Shown piece after piece: positions 45,545 to 52,928 of a stretch of 64,000 nucleotides of DNA; position 1 is the first letter of the stretch, and each line of letters starts with the position of its first letter. The notes beneath the pieces were generated by a model that was not told the DNA's origin, did not search any database, and saw only the letters and a program-made list of their open reading frames with translations. The stretch is from the IMG/VR virus record IMGVR_UViG_3300033995_001164, positions 124,001-188,000 of that record, one strand, 5' to 3'. Position numbers and translations under genes: made by a program.

Positions 45545-46306
45545 ATGGATACTAAAATTAAAAATAAGATAATTAAAGAATATCTAAAAGGTAAGGGTTC
45601 TACAACAATTGAGAGGGAATTAAAAGTTTCAAAAAAAACAATATTATTAATTCTTAACAATGAAGGTATTGTTAGAAAAAGAGATAGATGCAATTCTTTA
45701 AATATTGTGAAATCCGAAAATTATTTTATAGTTAATCGAATATGCCCTATATGCAACAAAAATGTTGAAACTAAATCAATAGATAGGGCAATTGCCTGTA
45801 GGAACCATTATAGAAAAATTAATAATAATACTCCTTGTAAGACATGTTCTATAAAATTACAAACAGGTGAGGGAAATCCATTTTACGGAAAAAAACACAC
45901 AAAAGAATCTCTTAATAAATTGTCAAAAACATTATCGGACAACCCAAGAAAATTTAGTTCATCGTCAAAACCCGAAAAACAAATTGAAAAAATTATTAAA
46001 GGTCTTGGGTATGAGGTTAAGAGAACATATAAAGTCAATGAATATATTTGTGATATCTACATACCTAAATTTAATCTAATAATTGAATATAATGGGGATT
46101 ATTGGCATTGTAATCCAAATAAATATGATTCTAATTATGTCCACCCTCATAAGAAAAAACCCTCATCTCAAATATGGTGTGAGGATAAAATAAGAATTGA
46201 CAACATCATTGATTATGATTATAATTTGGAAGTGGTTTGGGAATCTAATTTTAATGAAAAAACCACAATTCAAAATATAATTAAAAAATATGAAACAAAA
46301 AATTAA
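45545..46306 (+). mobile_element. Free-standing Vsr/DUF559-like homing endonuclease with NUMOD3 motif
   Basis: 253 aa; GEGNPFYGKKHTKES (NUMOD3); KPEKQI...CDIYI...IIEYNGDYWH...DKIR...VVWES. Confidence 0.8.
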
Positions 46307-47507
46307 TGTTGTAGTAATACCCAGCGATAAAAGTGGAGTTGGAAAATTTCGTTCTGTTGACCCTCATGTCTTTCTTCAAAATCTTTATAAAGATGAATTT
46401 CATATCGATATCGTCTATGACCCACCATACGATGATATGAACTTTTGGAAACAATATCAAATAGTTTCATACCATAGGAGTATTGGAGCAGATTTTGAAA
46501 GAGCAAACGCCCTTATCAGAATTTTAAACTCCATGGGTATTGTTACTGTTTGTGATATTGACGATTATTGGATGCCGGGTAAAGAACACCCAATTCACGA
46601 TATTATTAAATTTAATAAAATAAATGAAAAAATTGTCGAGAATCTTAAGGTTTCAAAATACGTTACAACAACAACAACTTTATTTGCGGATGAAATTAAA
46701 AAAATAAATAAAAATGTTTTTGTAATCCCCAACGCGATAAATCCAAATGAACCACAATTTAAAGAACCAACATTAGAGTCAGATAGATTGAGAATTGGTT
46801 GGTTAGGCGGTTCATCTCACTTACATGATTTAGATATTTTAAATCCATCATTTGGTAAATTAGCACAACACAAAGATAAATTACAATATGTTCTTTGTGG
46901 ATTTGATGTTAGGGGAACTGTCACAGAAATCAATTCTCAAACAGGGGAGCACGTAAAAAGAGATATTAGACCGGAAGAAACAGTTTGGGCTCAATATGAA
47001 AAGATTTTTACACAGAATTACGGAAATATTTCTGAAGAATACAAAAAACATTTAGTAAATTATAATACTAATTCGTTTCCGGATGAAATGACTGAATCAT
47101 ACTTAAGAGTTTGGACTAAACCAGTTACATCTTATGCTAAGAATTATTCAAAATTTGATGTATCTTTGTCTCCAATTAAGAATCATATGTTTAATAGAAT
47201 GAAATCTCAATTAAAAGTTATTGAGGCGGGATTCTATAAAAAGGCGTTAATCGCGTCTAACATTGGACCATACACTCTTGATTTGAAACATTGTTTAAAA
47301 AATGGGGAATTTGTTGATGGAAATGCGATGTTAGTTGATGAGGTTAGAAACCATTCTGATTGGGCAAAATGTATTGAAAAACTGATGAAGAACCCTAATT
47401 TAGTTAAAGATATGGGGGAAAGATTATATGAAACCGTTAAAGACAGATACGATTTGAATATAGTAACAAAAGATAGAAGAGATTTTTACTTAAGCATTAT
47501 TAAATAA
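46290..47507 (+). CDS. GT-B (GT4-like) glycosyltransferase
   Basis: 405 aa; RIGWLGGSSH, FDVSLSPI...KSQLKVIEAG...LIASNIGPY. Confidence 0.8.
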   Translation: MKQKINVVVIPSDKSGVGKFRSVDPHVFLQNLYKDEFHIDIVYDPPYDDMNFWKQYQIVSYHRSIGADFERANALIRILNSMGIVTVCDIDDYWMPGKEHPIHDIIKFNKINEKIVENLKVSKYVTTTTTLFADEIKKINKNVFVIPNAINPNEPQFKEPTLESDRLRIGWLGGSSHLHDLDILNPSFGKLAQHKDKLQYVLCGFDVRGTVTEINSQTGEHVKRDIRPEETVWAQYEKIFTQNYGNISEEYKKHLVNYNTNSFPDEMTESYLRVWTKPVTSYAKNYSKFDVSLSPIKNHMFNRMKSQLKVIEAGFYKKALIASNIGPYTLDLKHCLKNGEFVDGNAMLVDEVRNHSDWAKCIEKLMKNPNLVKDMGERLYETVKDRYDLNIVTKDRRDFYLSIIK

Positions 47508-47508
47508 T

Positions 47509-48210
47509 ATGATAAACATTCCATTAAATAAGATTTTATTTTTAGATATTGAAACCGTTGGGATTGAACCCACTTGGGAATCGTTATGTACGAATAGACC
47601 GGAACTTTCCTTTCAGTTTGAAAAATATTTTGATTGGTTTCAAAAAAGGTTCCCCGAAGATGCCGATGAAGGTCCGGGAAAAATGTTTGTTAATCGGGCA
47701 GCACTAGTCCCTGAATTCTTAAGAATTGCTTGTGTTAGTGTTGCCTTTATTGGGCCTGATGGTGAAACAAAAATGCAGTCATTTAGTAATCTTGATGAAA
47801 AAGAATTACTAATAGATGTTCAAAAAATGCTTTATCGTACCGGTGAATTAGGGTTTTTTCTTTGCGGACATAATGTTAAAGGTTTTGATATTCCTGTTCT
47901 TGCTAAAAGAATGATAATGAATGGGTTACTACCTCCAAAAATTTTACCAGGTCACGATACTAAACCTTGGGAAATTAAAGCTCTTGATACTAAAGAAGTG
48001 TGGCAATATGGTGGTTATGGGTCAATTGCCTCATTAGAGTTAATGTGTGTGTGTTTAGGTGTTGAATCGTCTAAAAATATGGAAGTAACAGGAAATAAAG
48101 TTCATGAAGCCTTTTGGATTAAAAAAGACATTAAAGGTATTGTAGAATACTGCGAAAAAGATGTTGAGGTACTAGTGGAAGTAATTAAAAAATTAAAAGA
48201 ATTAAAATAA
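47509..48210 (+). CDS. Stand-alone PolB-type 3'-5' exonuclease
   Basis: 233 aa; DEDDy motifs FLDIET, GHNVKGFD and YCEKD. Confidence 0.85.
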   Translation: MINIPLNKILFLDIETVGIEPTWESLCTNRPELSFQFEKYFDWFQKRFPEDADEGPGKMFVNRAALVPEFLRIACVSVAFIGPDGETKMQSFSNLDEKELLIDVQKMLYRTGELGFFLCGHNVKGFDIPVLAKRMIMNGLLPPKILPGHDTKPWEIKALDTKEVWQYGGYGSIASLELMCVCLGVESSKNMEVTGNKVHEAFWIKKDIKGIVEYCEKDVEVLVEVIKKLKELK

Positions 48211-48926
48211 TGGGAGGATTTGATGGTTTAGATGGTTTAGGGTTTGACCCTGAAATATTAAATGATATTCAAAATCATTTTAAAAAAATACAGGAAGAAT
48301 CAGGTGTTGAGATTGACGAAGACGACGAATACCAAAAAGAGTTGGAAGAATTGATTGGTATGACGTATGAGGAGATGAACGAAGACGCGTTAAAAGCAAT
48401 TAAGACTAAAAATTTAAAAGTGGAATTATTAAATGAGGATGCGAAGTTTCCTGAATACGCTTACCCAAGTGATTCAGGATTTGACCTATTTTCGACGGAA
48501 GAAGTTATTCTACCTCCATTTGGTCGGGGATTAGTCCCAACAGGTATTAAATTATCAATCCCTGATGAATTTGAAATACAAGTAAGACCAAAAAGCGGTT
48601 TAGCGATTAATCAAGGTTTAACAGTATTAAATACTCCCGGAACTGTAGATTGTTTCTCTGAGGATATGAAAATACTTACAGTTGATGGTGAGAAATTATT
48701 ATCGGAATTAAAAATAAACGATGTTGTTTTTTCAGTTAATGAAAAAACTTTTGAGATTGAAAAAGATGTCGTATCCAACATATTTGATACAGAAACTCAA
48801 GAAGTTCTTATTATTGAAACGGAATTAGGTGTGCTAGAAGTCACACCAAATTCCGAGGTATATACGACTAACGGAATTATTTTAGCCAAAAATTTAAAAG
48901 AAAATGATGAAATTATAATCTTTTAA
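48210..48926 (+). CDS. dut: dUTPase N-terminal half fused to split-intein N fragment
   Basis: dUTPase motifs SGFDL, RPKSGLA and TPGTVD, then Cys (48651) begins a 91-aa IntN (CFSEDMKILT...LAKNLKENDEI). Confidence 0.9.
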   Translation: MGGFDGLDGLGFDPEILNDIQNHFKKIQEESGVEIDEDDEYQKELEELIGMTYEEMNEDALKAIKTKNLKVELLNEDAKFPEYAYPSDSGFDLFSTEEVILPPFGRGLVPTGIKLSIPDEFEIQVRPKSGLAINQGLTVLNTPGTVDCFSEDMKILTVDGEKLLSELKINDVVFSVNEKTFEIEKDVVSNIFDTETQEVLIIETELGVLEVTPNSEVYTTNGIILAKNLKENDEIIIF

Positions 48927-48938
48927 TCACCAGTATAC

Positions 48939-48960
48939 TATCTATCAATAAAGATAGATA
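48939..48960 (+). promoter_or_regulatory. Hairpin immediately upstream of endonuclease start
   Basis: Perfect 8-bp stem TATCTATC-AATAAA-GATAGATA ending 6 nt before ATG 48967. Confidence 0.45.
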
Positions 48961-48966
48961 TAGAGT

Positions 48967-49854
48967 ATGTCGGTAAAATGTCAAATATGCGGGGTTGAGA
49001 AAGAATACTCAATAGTGGAACACTTAAAGTACGAACACAAAATAACCTCAAAAGAATATAAAGAAAGGTTTCCTAAATCTAATGTTAAGTCAGTTGAATT
49101 TTTTAAAATGAATTCAAATAATATGAAGTCAAAATGGTCGGAACCTGAGTTTAAAGAAAAGATGAAAATTTCAAGAAAAATTTCACATAATAAACCAGAA
49201 TTTATTGAAAAAATGAGTGAAATTGTGAAAAAAAAACACAAGGAAACTCCTGAAATTTACTCCGGTTTTACATCGTGGTCTAAAAGTGAAAGGTTTAAAG
49301 AATGGGTTAAATCTGAAGAAAGAATTAAAAAAATATCAAAAAGTTCAAAAGAAAGATGGGAAGATGATGATTATCGAAAAAGAACTATACAAACAATTAA
49401 AGAGAGATTAAATGATGGGAGATGTCAAAAAAGTGACGATTTTAAAGAAAAAATGTCGGAGATAATATCAAAATTATATAGTTCAGGTAAGTTCTCTAAT
49501 GACAGTAATAGATATAAAACAGGAACATACACATCAAATAAACAAGAAACTTTTTATTATTCATCATCATACGAGTTAGATTCTATGAAGTTTTTGGACT
49601 CTATAGATTATGTTAAAACATGGACAAATAAACACGGAATAAGAATCAAATATTATTATAATAATATGAATAGATACTATATTCCTGATTTCTATGTTGA
49701 ATTAGAAAATGGTAATAAATTTATTATTGAAATGAAGGGATGGGAAACCGAAGAAGTTTTAATTAAACAAAAATATACATTAAAACAATACCCAAACTAT
49801 AAACTATTTTATTCAGTCGACGATTTAAAAAAATTCATATATGAAAACAAGTAA
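48967..49854 (+). mobile_element. Free-standing endonuclease (C2H2 finger, NUMOD3-like repeats, TnsA-like PD-(D/E)XK head)
   Basis: 295 aa; CQIC...H...H; KEKMKIS, EKMSEI and KEKMSEI repeats; SSYE...YIPDFYV...IIEMKG. Confidence 0.8.
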
Positions 49855-50146
49855 AATTAAAAAAATCACCAAAACGGAAAAACAAACTTATGATATAACA
49901 GTAAAAAACAATCATAATTTTTTTTGTAATAAACATCTAATACACAATTGTGGTTATAATGGAGAAATTAAAGTAATCGTCTTCAACACAAATAATATAA
50001 CAAAATCAATCCCTAAAGGGACAAAAATCGCTCAAGCAGTTTTATGTCCAGTGGTTAATGGAAAATATGTCAACTTAATTCAAGTTGATTCAATAACTGA
50101 AGGGGAACGAGGAAATAACGGATTTGGGTCAACAGGTTTAATTTAA
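49841..50146 (+). CDS. dut: Split-intein C fragment fused to dUTPase C-terminal half
   Basis: 36-aa IntC MKTSKIKKI...TYDITVKNNHNFFCNKHLIHN (to 49948), then C+1 GYNGEI, KIAQAVL and RGNNGFGSTG (dUTPase motifs 3-5). Confidence 0.9.
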   Translation: MKTSKIKKITKTEKQTYDITVKNNHNFFCNKHLIHNCGYNGEIKVIVFNTNNITKSIPKGTKIAQAVLCPVVNGKYVNLIQVDSITEGERGNNGFGSTGLI

Positions 50147-50153
50147 AACAATC

Positions 50154-50717
50154 ATGAAAATAATACAGTTAGGAACAAATGATGGCCAGGATGATTTAAC
50201 AAAAATAGTTATGTCGTATAAACCATCGGACATTGAACTTTTGGTTTTAGTTGAACCTCAAGAAATTTTTAATAGTAGTATTAAAAATATATATCAAGAT
50301 TATAATTTTAATATTGAAAATAAAATTATAAATTTAGACGAAAGTAAAAAATCTGAAATTTTTTATACTTGTATTCATAAACATTTAAGCAGTTTAAAAA
50401 AAGAAAACATTGAAAATCATGGTTTAGGTGTTCCAATATCAGAGGTTGTTTACGAATCAATAACATTGAATGAGTTATTTGAAAAATATAATGTGGTTGA
50501 TTTGGATATTTTATTTGTTGATGTTGAAGGTATGGACGACAAAATAATATCAAGTATTGATTTTAATAAAGTTTCTATAAAACAAATTTACTACGAATTT
50601 TCTCACATAGATGACGAATCTTTTATTAATTTTTTAAATACAAGGGGATATGAAGTCCATAAAAATATTTTTTATAATGGATATACCAATTTGGCAACTA
50701 AAAAATGTAATTTATGA
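50154..50717 (+). CDS. FkbM-family methyltransferase
   Basis: 187 aa; IIQLGTNDG, LVEP, ITLNELFEKY..DILFVDVEG. Confidence 0.8.
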   Translation: MKIIQLGTNDGQDDLTKIVMSYKPSDIELLVLVEPQEIFNSSIKNIYQDYNFNIENKIINLDESKKSEIFYTCIHKHLSSLKKENIENHGLGVPISEVVYESITLNELFEKYNVVDLDILFVDVEGMDDKIISSIDFNKVSIKQIYYEFSHIDDESFINFLNTRGYEVHKNIFYNGYTNLATKKCNL

Positions 50718-51445
50718 AAATATCGTTAGTTTGTATTGCGAAAAATGAGGATAATTATATTCAGGAATGGATTAATTATCATTTAAAATTAGGGTTTGAT
50801 AATATTTTTATTTACGAAAATGATTGGGACTCAAAAATTGAAAATCATAAAGTCACTAAATACCCTGTTGTGGGAGTTAAACAACAAATTCCCGTCTATA
50901 ATGAGTTTATTTCAAAACATAAAAACAGTTATGATTGGGCAGCGTTTTTAGATGTTGATGAGTTTTTGGTATTAAAAAAACATAAAACAATTCACGAATT
51001 TATTGAGGACTACAAAGACAATGATTCTATTGGGGTTAATTGGGTTTTGTTCGGTGACAATAATTTAACTAAAAGTGACGACTACGGAATGATTAATCGT
51101 TTTACAATGAGACAAAATTCACCAAATCACCACATTAAATCAATAATTAATTTAAAAAATGCTGGATATATGTCGGTACATAACCATAGTGGTAAATGTG
51201 TTGATACCAATTATAAAAGAATTGACAATTCACCATTTAATTATAATGGACCTATAGATGTCGCACAAATAAATCATTATTTTTGTAAAACAAAAGATGA
51301 GTTTATCGAGAAATTAAATAGGGGTAGGGCCGACAATGGAACACATAGAGACATTTCCGATTTTAACGACAATAATTTCAATGAAATTGAAGACTTAACA
51401 GCAATGAACTTTTTATATGATAACAATAATTTACTCAACACATAA
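50714..51445 (+). CDS. GT2/GT92-like glycosyltransferase
   Basis: 243 aa; CIAKNEDNYIQEWINYHLKLGFD, AFLDVDEF, INHY. Confidence 0.8.
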   Translation: MKISLVCIAKNEDNYIQEWINYHLKLGFDNIFIYENDWDSKIENHKVTKYPVVGVKQQIPVYNEFISKHKNSYDWAAFLDVDEFLVLKKHKTIHEFIEDYKDNDSIGVNWVLFGDNNLTKSDDYGMINRFTMRQNSPNHHIKSIINLKNAGYMSVHNHSGKCVDTNYKRIDNSPFNYNGPIDVAQINHYFCKTKDEFIEKLNRGRADNGTHRDISDFNDNNFNEIEDLTAMNFLYDNNNLLNT

Positions 51446-52928
51446 AGACGAAATTTATAATAACAAATTTAGACAACATTTGTTACAAAGTTCCGGGCTA
51501 AAAGATATTCAAATATTAGAATACATTAATCACAATCAATATAGTTTATCTGAATTATACAATAGAGGTATATCCGAATCAGAAAACGACATCATTGTAT
51601 GTTGTCATAACGATATAAAACTTGAAAATGGTTGGGGTAAAAAATTACTTAATGATTTTGATAAAAATCCTGATTATGGGATTATAGGTAAAGCTGGTTC
51701 TTGTTATTTTCCGGAATCCGGAATTTATTGGGAAAAAATGCGTCAGACAATGGTTGGTCAAGTTTATCATCACCCTGAAGGTCGGAAAAAATGGTTAAAT
51801 ACTTATTCATCAAAATTACCGTATTTAATCCCTGTCGTAACTATTGATGGATTATTTATATCGTTTAATAAATTAAAAGTTAAGAACCAATTTGATGAAA
51901 CAATTGGTAAATTTCACTTTTATGACCATTTATTTTGTATACCAAATTATTTAGACGGTGTTAAAATTGGTGTAACCTCATCATTTGAAATTACTCATGA
52001 ATCCGTAGGACAACCGAATCAAGAATTTTTTGAATCAAAAGATAAATTTATTTTAAAGTGGGGAAAAAAATTACCCTTAGATTTGAAACCTGAAAAAATA
52101 TATGTCCCCGAAATTAAAGAAAAACCAATTAAAAATATTGGTAAAGTTGCCATTATTATTCCGACCAAAAGTAAATTAGATTTATTATTACCTTGTATCG
52201 AATCATTTTACGAACATTGTAACGAAAATTTATTTGAAATATTCATATCAGACACTGGTTCATCAGAAGAAGAAAAAAATGAAATTAAAAATTTTATTTC
52301 ATTTAAACAAAACATAAAGTTAATTGAATATGATTATTACAATTTTGCGAAAATAAATAATGATGTCGTTAAAAATCATTTAACTGACTCTCATGAGTTC
52401 ATTTTATTTTGTAATAATGATATTAAGGTTTGTAATAATGCGATTTACGGAATGTTAAAAATCTTCAAAGAAAATAAAAAAGTTGGGACCGTAGGTGCTA
52501 GACTTCACTTTAAAGATAATACAATACAACATGGAGGTATTACAATGTTAATTAATGGTAATAATATTTTAGGTGTCACCCATAATAATTTAGGTAGTTA
52601 CTATGGTGATTCGATTAGTAAGAAAACTATTCTCGGAAGTACCGGAGCGTTATTAATGATAAAAAAGATAGTATTTGAACAATCCGGATATTTTAACGAA
52701 AATTACATCAATTGTTTTGAAGATGTTGAATTAAATTTAAAAACTAACTTGTTAGGCTACTCTAATGTGTATGACGGAAATATAGTTGCGTATCACTATG
52801 AAAGCAGTACAAGAAATGAAGATGAAGATAATATAAAAAAATTAATGTCAGATTACCACAATAATTTATTACCATTCATAATTAAACATTTTAATCATTT
52901 AAAAGATAAAATTCAAATTATTAATTAA
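51417..52928 (+). CDS. Two-domain GT2-type glycosyltransferase
   Basis: 503 aa; CCHNDI and FHFYD in domain 1; IIIPTK, FCNNDI, TGALLMI...FEDVEL in domain 2. Confidence 0.8.
   Translation: MITIIYSTHKDEIYNNKFRQHLLQSSGLKDIQILEYINHNQYSLSELYNRGISESENDIIVCCHNDIKLENGWGKKLLNDFDKNPDYGIIGKAGSCYFPESGIYWEKMRQTMVGQVYHHPEGRKKWLNTYSSKLPYLIPVVTIDGLFISFNKLKVKNQFDETIGKFHFYDHLFCIPNYLDGVKIGVTSSFEITHESVGQPNQEFFESKDKFILKWGKKLPLDLKPEKIYVPEIKEKPIKNIGKVAIIIPTKSKLDLLLPCIESFYEHCNENLFEIFISDTGSSEEEKNEIKNFISFKQNIKLIEYDYYNFAKINNDVVKNHLTDSHEFILFCNNDIKVCNNAIYGMLKIFKENKKVGTVGARLHFKDNTIQHGGITMLINGNNILGVTHNNLGSYYGDSISKKTILGSTGALLMIKKIVFEQSGYFNENYINCFEDVELNLKTNLLGYSNVYDGNIVAYHYESSTRNEDEDNIKKLMSDYHNNLLPFIIKHFNHLKDKIQIIN

Follow-up and report, generated by a model that had tools for sequence, protein, structure and literature searches.

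The sole dUTPase gene of a T4-like jumbo phage is broken, right after the catalytic aspartate of motif III, by what appears to be a naturally split DnaB-type mini-intein whose N-terminal half (IntN) lacks the block B histidine, and this absence is a conserved trait of a whole clade, being neither a private mutation nor an error. Based on sequence comparison, we consider it likely that the fractured gene is joined by class 1 trans-splicing of the split intein, with the block B histidine playing no part in activating the first step. The inteins found at this site form a large, diverse and apparently functional clade of phage split inteins devoid of that residue, all at one insertion site and behind an aspartate, and may offer a natural system in which to study the actual role of the block B histidine and the means by which exteins can take its place.

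Organization of the fractured dUTPase locus

The window, a stretch of 64,000 nucleotides, belongs to a 309-kb virus genome with a G+C content of 31.6% and a T4 gp23-like capsid gene. The size of the genome, its T4 gp23-like capsid gene, what we read as a T4-like portal gene, and the lack of an NCLDV capsid identify it as that of a T4-like jumbo phage, known only from metagenomes; a giant virus of eukaryotes was considered and rejected on the same capsid and portal evidence.

Three closely packed ORFs on the plus strand fill positions 48210-50146 of the window (Table 1). The first matches the Pfam dUTPase family and then HINT/intein models, and each of the two outer ORFs carries one intein half at a single locus, which is the arrangement of a naturally split intein or "fractured gene". 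The break lies within dUTPase motif III, between the catalytic Asp and Gly-Tyr, and no other dUTPase is present in the genome. The dUTPase begins with an acidic, Asp/Glu-rich extension of about 70 residues (48210-48420), shared with the intein-free (empty) alleles L009-L015 and L038-L044. The order of N-half, nuclease ORF and C-half is constant across all intein-bearing loci that have the nuclease ORF. In the window the 3' end of this ORF and the start of the ORF for IntC, the C-terminal intein half, overlap by 14 nt (49841-49854), which suggests that translation of the C-half is coupled to the endonuclease gene. A promoter and terminator scan gave nothing exceeding the shuffle background.

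In the 295-aa ORF between the intein halves, a C2H2-like zinc finger at the N terminus and repeated helical modules are followed at the C terminus by a PD-(D/E)xK-like nuclease motif (..P-D-F..E-M-K..), and the ORF is presumed to encode a putative homing endonuclease. Its family matches are weak in Pfam (DUF1064 and TnsA_N), and in PHROG it matches 22215 as well as 15427, "endonuclease", the latter at an E value of 2.6e-5; no solved relatives were found by sequence. The ORF is found at 60-71% identity in every intein-bearing near relative, and among the wider relatives locus L054 is an exception in having no nuclease ORF. A hairpin in the preceding spacer covers the ribosome-binding region and the start codon of the endonuclease ORF. 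It folds in eight distinct loci at -8 to -16.5 kcal/mol, with an outer stem and a conserved core stem of 6-8 bp (T-A-T-(C/T)-T-A-T-C / G-A-T-A-(G/A)-A-T-A; 7-8 bp in the window and 4-6 in relatives); covariation support is weak, and so is the consensus fold once divergent loci are added. Hairpins throttle the translation of homing endonuclease genes in T4, and the one described here may act likewise on the endonuclease ORF.

The genes flanking the fractured dUTPase look like a sugar-modification gene cluster. Outside the window, the same genome holds a second, contiguous intein in a 939-aa ORF whose host, read from the translation, we take to be the T4-like portal protein. This intein has a nested HNH endonuclease domain, ends in ..S-H-N with Thr at +1, and its block B is an ordinary T-W-E-H; it provides an internal control, because a canonical block B in the same genome indicates that neither the genetic code nor the assembly is odd.

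Table 1. Features of the fractured dUTPase locus, its surroundings and related loci (positions are those of the window unless a locus is named)
Feature	Position	Strand	Remarks
Glycosyltransferase	46290-47507		flanks fractured dUTPase
3'-5' exonuclease	47509-48210		flanks fractured dUTPase
dUTPase N-half + IntN ORF	48210-48926	+	238 aa; ATG at 48210
N-extein, dUTPase N-half	48210-48650	+	147 aa, motifs I-III; Pfam PF00692 positions 2-63, E 1.6e-9; PHROG 135 dUTPase; ends ..N-T-P-G-T-V-D
Catalytic Asp147, dUTPase motif III	48648-48650	+	GAT; last N-extein residue
IntN	48651-48926	+	91 aa (48651-48923) plus stop; starts C-F-S-E-D-M-K
Cys1 of IntN	48651-48653	+	
Block B (N3) of IntN	48828-48866	+	G60 to T72, G-V-L-E-V-T-P-N-S-E-V-Y-T
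Thr65 (B7)	48843-48845	+	ACA
Asn67 (B9)		+	
Ser68 (B10)	48852-48854	+	TCC
Intergenic spacer with hairpin	48927-48974	+	MFE -12.8 kcal/mol
Free-standing nuclease-like ORF	48967-49854	+	295 aa; between intein halves
IntC + dUTPase C-half ORF	49841-50146	+	101 aa
IntC	49841-49948	+	36 aa, Lys-rich; ..T-Y-D-I-T-V..N-H-N-F-F..L-I-H-N; Asp18 (F4), His25 (F13), His35-Asn36 (G6-G7), clade-typical Cys29 and His32
C-extein, dUTPase C-half	49949-50146	+	Cys+1 (TGT, 49949-49951); 65 aa, motifs III-V, plus stop; Pfam PF00692 positions 71-129, E 2.5e-10
FkbM-type methyltransferase	50154-50717		flanks fractured dUTPase
Two downstream ORFs	50714-51445 and 51417-52928		glycosyltransferase-like by eye
Second, contiguous intein	G000:C1:202754-205570	-	939-aa ORF; same genome, outside window
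K-type sister dUTPase split inteins	L046:2811-4643 and L050:1329-3312		same insertion site; start C-V-P
Divergent Ser-type member	L048:1376-3215		IntC ..S-D-I-T-V-R-N-N-N-N-F-F-A-N-N-F-L-M-H-N
Thr-type dUTPase split intein without endonuclease gene	L054:3001-3964		N-half and C-half genes directly overlapping
Empty-allele insertion site	L009		..GGAACAGTTGAT / TCCGGTTATAAT..

Block B in the dUTPase-site inteins

A first-pass annotation of this DNA had read block B of IntN as LEVTPNSEVYT, with a serine codon where the histidine is expected, and blocks F and G of IntC as canonical (Y-D-I-T-V..N-H-N-F..H-N). Both readings hold, the serine codon being found at the position given and in frame with the start codon of the ORF. 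Independent phmmer comparisons with solved structures place TPNS opposite TGNH in the DnaB mini-intein of Npu (4o1r) and opposite TANH in that of Ssp. Another histidine might have been placed at B10 by realignment, as the same annotation had pointed out, but such a shift is excluded, since IntN contains no histidine in all of its 91 residues and two independent alignments agree. Of the IntN residues that mark a class 1 intein, Cys1 and the block B Thr are present and the block B His is absent.

The identical sequence occurs on five other IMG/VR contigs (L003-L007) and the protein on 41, from which it follows that Ser68 is not a read or assembly error. Conservation of the serine among homologues had been proposed as a check, and in 120 homologous N-fragments, 59-100% identical over IntN, position B10 is Ser in 99, Thr in 21 and His in none, contrary to the outcome in which all homologues carry His. 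With 41 contigs and 120 of 120 homologues lacking the histidine, a private mutation or sequencing error is ruled out. Cys1, Thr65 and Asn67 are each found in all 120 fragments. Nine distinct DNA versions use the B10 codons TCC, TCA, AGC, AGT, ACA and ACT, and because both Ser codon families are in use, connected only through Thr, a hydroxyl at this position appears to be selectively kept.

The extent of the trait was assessed by scoring IntN alone against 1.84 billion cluster representatives and aligning the best 150 hits. Among these, B10 is His in 131 stretches, in many other host proteins, and Thr, Ser, Lys and Gln in 32, 5, 6 and 2 stretches, respectively. Nearly all of the Thr and Ser stretches, six of six with Lys and one of the two with Gln (P0293) are dUTPase N-halves broken at ..G-x-(I/V)-D before the Cys, and the remaining few belong to other hosts (multi-HINT proteins P0255, P0344 and P0249). 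Counted as clusters, all 38 dUTPase-site IntN among the best 150 hits have Ser, Thr, Lys or Gln at B10. A FastTree phylogeny built from 143 IntN stretches groups the 31 dUTPase inteins of the Ser/Thr type in one clade (support 0.805), and the 38 dUTPase-site IntN of the Ser/Thr, Lys and Gln types together in another that encloses it (support 0.885). Since no His-bearing member falls within the latter, a single loss of the block B histidine, in the ancestor of the dUTPase-site inteins, is most likely. At 90% identity the clade amounts to more than 120 clusters, at 50% to 38, and the His-less state persists down to approximately 43% identity within the Ser/Thr type, lower still to the Lys type, and across two associated endonuclease types.

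Several members of this clade display features of their own. Block B of the K-type sister inteins is I-P-x-x-K, so that B7 is Pro and B10 is Lys, and the F4 Asp is replaced by His in L046 and by Asn in L050; their active site departs still further from the canonical one than that of the Ser/Thr type. Between the halves of the K-type loci lies a Cys-rich, Vsr-like endonuclease (..E-C-x-G-x-Y-W-H-C..), and in L046 a gene with a Cas12f1-like TNB (TnpB-type) domain is located at 292-1371, about 1.4 kb upstream of the fractured dUTPase. In the divergent Ser-type member L048 the F13 His, Cys29 and His32 are all missing, leaving the penultimate His alone in the intein motifs, with one further His in the tail beyond IntN. 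The Thr-type locus L054 resembles the endonuclease-less gp41-7 locus of Dassa 2009 (PMC2677866), and upstream of its split dUTPase an 806-aa glycosyltransferase-like ORF with a faint intein match is found.

Activation of the first step and alternative readings

We infer that covalent splicing occurs. Upon translation, the acidic strand of IntN and the Lys-rich strand of IntC would zip together into the HINT fold, and the ordinary class 1 route would be followed, from the N-S acyl shift at Cys1 through transesterification to Cys+1 to cyclisation of Asn36, the product being the two dUTPase halves ligated by the intein. The first step would be activated without a block B His, in whose place Ser or Thr stands in the clade and Lys or Gln in the sister lineages. 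Among the options considered in the first-pass annotation, a non-canonical first step is the one favoured here, given that the His-less block B is under purifying selection clade-wide and that the other catalytic residues are invariant; this part of its interpretation is likely to stand, while the part that reduced the intein to a docking pair loses ground, and splicing may, as it also suggested, be slow or conditional.

The two halves are predicted to dock, in runs where IntN kept ten residues of its extein and IntC fourteen, the separate natural ORFs serving as input for searches and folds. The pair scored an ipSAE of 0.74 against 0.01 for the best control, the ipSAE mark being reached by 51 of 78 solved complexes and by 2 of 108 mismatched pairs; runs share at least 87% of contacts, with partner pLDDT of at least 68. 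Since split-intein complexes have already been solved, this pass shows likeness to known complexes rather than proof of binding. The model pairs the acidic strand of IntN (residues 52-57) with the Lys-rich strand of IntC (6-12) and places the junction residues 146-148 and IntC residues 1-37 in the interface.

What could compensate for the histidine is suggested by the residue that precedes the intein. Besides the standard nucleophiles, the feature common to all His-less members is Asp at -1, and in a cross-table of the aligned stretches those with -1 Asp are all without His, whereas those with His all have another -1 residue; because the dUTPase-site inteins form one clade and the association reflects a single evolutionary event, it is not statistical evidence of causation. 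In standard inteins, premature cleavage can result from an Asp at -1. Our leading idea, although a tentative one, is co-adaptation with the obligatory -1 Asp: the hydroxyl at B10, or the Lys or Gln, would hold the carboxylate of the -1 Asp, which in turn would either assist proton transfer at the scissile bond or need to be restrained from premature N-terminal cleavage. Alternatively, the -1 Asp may render a fully activated junction too prone to cleavage, such that the histidine was selected against. A more specific version, rather speculative, is that the dUTPase-site inteins constitute a mechanistic subclass of class 1, with a substrate-assisted N-S acyl shift that relies on the catalytic Asp of the host enzyme at -1 and on B10, instead of the canonical His, for positioning its carboxylate. 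If true, the first step would depend on the extein and on the assembly of both halves. Residues within the intein have also been considered as compensators, namely Lys38, which is not universal in the clade, and His32 and Cys29 of IntC, each found in 71 of 72 close relatives and both absent from L048.

Of these, His32 in block G position 3, which is Ile in DnaB inteins, might take over the role of the block B His in trans, in which case step 1 could start only once the halves meet. This is an unlikely solution to our mind. IntN itself has no His to offer, His32 is kept in the divergent T-type loci L054 and L055 as well as in the close relatives, and in the docking model it contacts, together with Leu33, IntN residues Ile88, Ile89 and Tyr71. 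However, the position is Phe in the S-type L048, which also lacks Cys29 and the F13 His, and Phe again in P0183, whose likely partner, from a contig of equal length, keeps Ser at B10, and it is Leu in the K-type members. Moreover, some four residues of the strand separate G3 from the splice junction, and it is doubtful that G3 can reach the scissile bond.

It is less probable still that the intein halves splice no longer and serve just to keep the two parts of the dUTPase in non-covalent contact, in the way that tails act in the NrdA of phage Aeh1, which is split by mobE. The missing catalytic His of step 1, the predicted docking and the precedent itself, a gene split by a mobile endonuclease and assembled non-covalently (PMC3045599), are all compatible with docking only. 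Against it stands the conservation of the splicing residues, as Cys1 is invariant in the 120 N-fragments, and Asp18, His25, His35, Asn36 and Cys+1 are each present in 72 of 72 IntC-bearing C-fragments, across lineages that are saturated at synonymous sites. The block F Asp and His, the block G His-Asn pair and the +1 nucleophile expected of a class 1 intein are, in other words, all in place. Near-invariant columns number 22 of 91 in IntN and 15 of 36 in IntC, and all six catalytic positions are among them, the chance of which is approximately 0.001 by our own arithmetic from the column counts. A further argument against docking only comes from residue +1, which is Cys in 72 of 72 intein-bearing alleles and Ser in the 10 of 10 empty alleles examined; in closely related phages the uninterrupted dUTPase reads G-T-V-D-S-G-Y-N-G-E, the break site falling between GTVD and SGYNGE. 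For the exteins of the window, identity to empty alleles is 86-94% (N) and 78-86% (C), and to other intein-bearing alleles it falls to 62-82% (N) and 56-69% (C); because they are thus closer to alleles with Ser than to alleles with Cys, Cys+1 moves with the intein and not with the host gene. Finally, a 127-residue HINT domain retained inside motif III should, from what is generally known of dUTPase structure, occlude the active site. As docking only leaves the invariant nucleophiles and the Ser-to-Cys change at +1 unexplained, and the break lies inside motif III, the suggestion in the first-pass annotation of a mere docking pair is disfavoured.

The distribution of the element is patchy, with occupied and empty alleles side by side, as would be expected of a homing element. 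Compared with distant alleles, the intein halves of the window are 67-77% (IntN) and 81-92% (IntC) identical, and in some phage pairs, such as that with L037, the intein halves are more alike than the exteins.

The possibility that the element is decaying, with an inactive intein, a dUTPase pseudogene in pieces and the serine as one lesion among others, is very improbable. It could draw on another natural intein without His at B10, that of Arthrobacter DnaB, which is described as a pseudogene in the account given in PMC4031507, and on locus L027, where the C-extein stops early after C-S-Y-N (2076-2243; 56-aa product, P0193). The latter copy is apparently decaying, and its truncated C-extein indicates that some copies do decay. 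The dN/dS ratios, however, lie between 0.11 and 0.20 in all four parts (Nei-Gojobori, eight distinct loci: IntN 0.135, IntC 0.11, flanking dUTPase parts 0.13 and 0.20), with synonymous differences near saturation in the same comparison; no stops or frameshifts are found in more than 100 homologues, the same state extends clade-wide to about 43% identity with two endonuclease types, and the genome has this dUTPase only. Judging from these signs, the dUTPase-site split intein looks fully functional. A different splicing class in which the block B His is dispensable, either class 2 (Cys+1 attacks the N-terminal junction) or class 3 (branch at an internal Cys, the F4 Cys of a Trp B12/Cys F4/Thr G5, or WCT, signature), hardly deserves credit, as the extra conserved Cys29 that could speak for it, located where block F ends, is replaced by Ala in P0195 and L048, the signature is absent (B12 Val or Ile, F4 Asp, G5 Ile), and class 2 inteins lack the nucleophile at residue 1, which here is Cys in 120 of 120 N-fragments.

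Comparison with known inteins and split genes

No description of a dUTPase intein was found in the literature searched, and the element is absent from 50,697 GenBank phage records, in which only ordinary dUTPases were matched, at less than 60% identity. Its architecture is that of the "fractured genes" of phage metagenomes (gp41-1, gp41-8, NrdJ-1, NrdA-2 and IMPDH-1; Dassa et al. 2009, PMC2677866), whose halves span 88-105 and 33-54 aa, compared with 91 and 36 aa here. The charge polarity is of the NrdJ-1 type, IntN being negative and IntC positive, and in both cases alleles with and without the insert coexist. Nevertheless, dUTPase is not one of the eight host enzyme types of that study and is now added to the enzymes known as fractured. 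The inteins described there are reported to retain five catalytic residues including the block B His, in contrast to the dUTPase clade, and their endonucleases belong to a Vsr-like family, also found in our K-type sister lineage, rather than to the PD-(D/E)xK-like type with a C2H2 finger. Likewise, in Aeromonas phage Aeh1 a nucleotide-metabolism gene, nrdA, is interrupted by the mobile endonuclease gene mobE (Crona et al. 2010, PMC3045599). NrdA, however, contains no intein and its function is restored by non-covalent tails, whereas complete HINT halves with their nucleophiles are found here.

By sequence, the closest solved relatives are the Ssp and Npu DnaB mini-inteins (PDB 1mi8 and 4o1r; E 5e-4 to 6e-4), which share with our IntN a ..N-E-x-T-x-x-(I/L)-E.. 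segment and the T-x-N-(H/S) register of block B. These inteins are contiguous or artificially split, reside in DnaB behind a Gly at -1 and depend on His73; the Ssp DnaB intein, which is the closest relative to have been characterised, cannot do without its block B His (PMC6333167), and the H73A variant works only when given a bulky -1 residue (PMC6333167). The dUTPase-site inteins, small in both halves (91 + 36 aa) and natively accepting Asp at -1, could on this account serve protein ligation. The cysteine-less PolB16 OarG intein (Pasch et al. 2023, PMC10189870) is likewise natural and split and can function without its block B (N3) His, but it has retained this residue and relies critically on a second His, in motif NX near Ser1; the dUTPase IntN has no His and the intein uses Cys1 and Cys+1.

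Conservation among intein residues is highest for the block B His (PMC4031507), and the natural inteins without it that are named in this 2014 review are only Tko CDC21-1, compensated by Lys58, and one pseudogene. The CDC21-1 orthologues of Thermococcus kodakaraensis (Tori et al. 2012, as related in PMC4031507 and PMC6333167) thus provide the other case of a natural class 1 intein devoid of the block B His, and according to these accounts the family is active, with its N-terminal junction activated by a compensatory route. The CDC21-1 structure paper does not discuss block B. A Lys equivalent to that of CDC21-1, expected about 23 residues past B10 by the rule in PMC4031507, was not found in IntN, whose residues 90-91 are Ile-Phe, nor was any sequence relationship to CDC21-1 inteins, the nearest relatives being DnaB-type. 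As described in the same sources, the CDC21-1 inteins are archaeal and contiguous, contain an endonuclease domain, rely on a Lys58 outside the motifs and follow a bulky Leu at -1, whereas those of the dUTPase clade are from phages and split, with Ser or Thr at B10 and Asp at -1.
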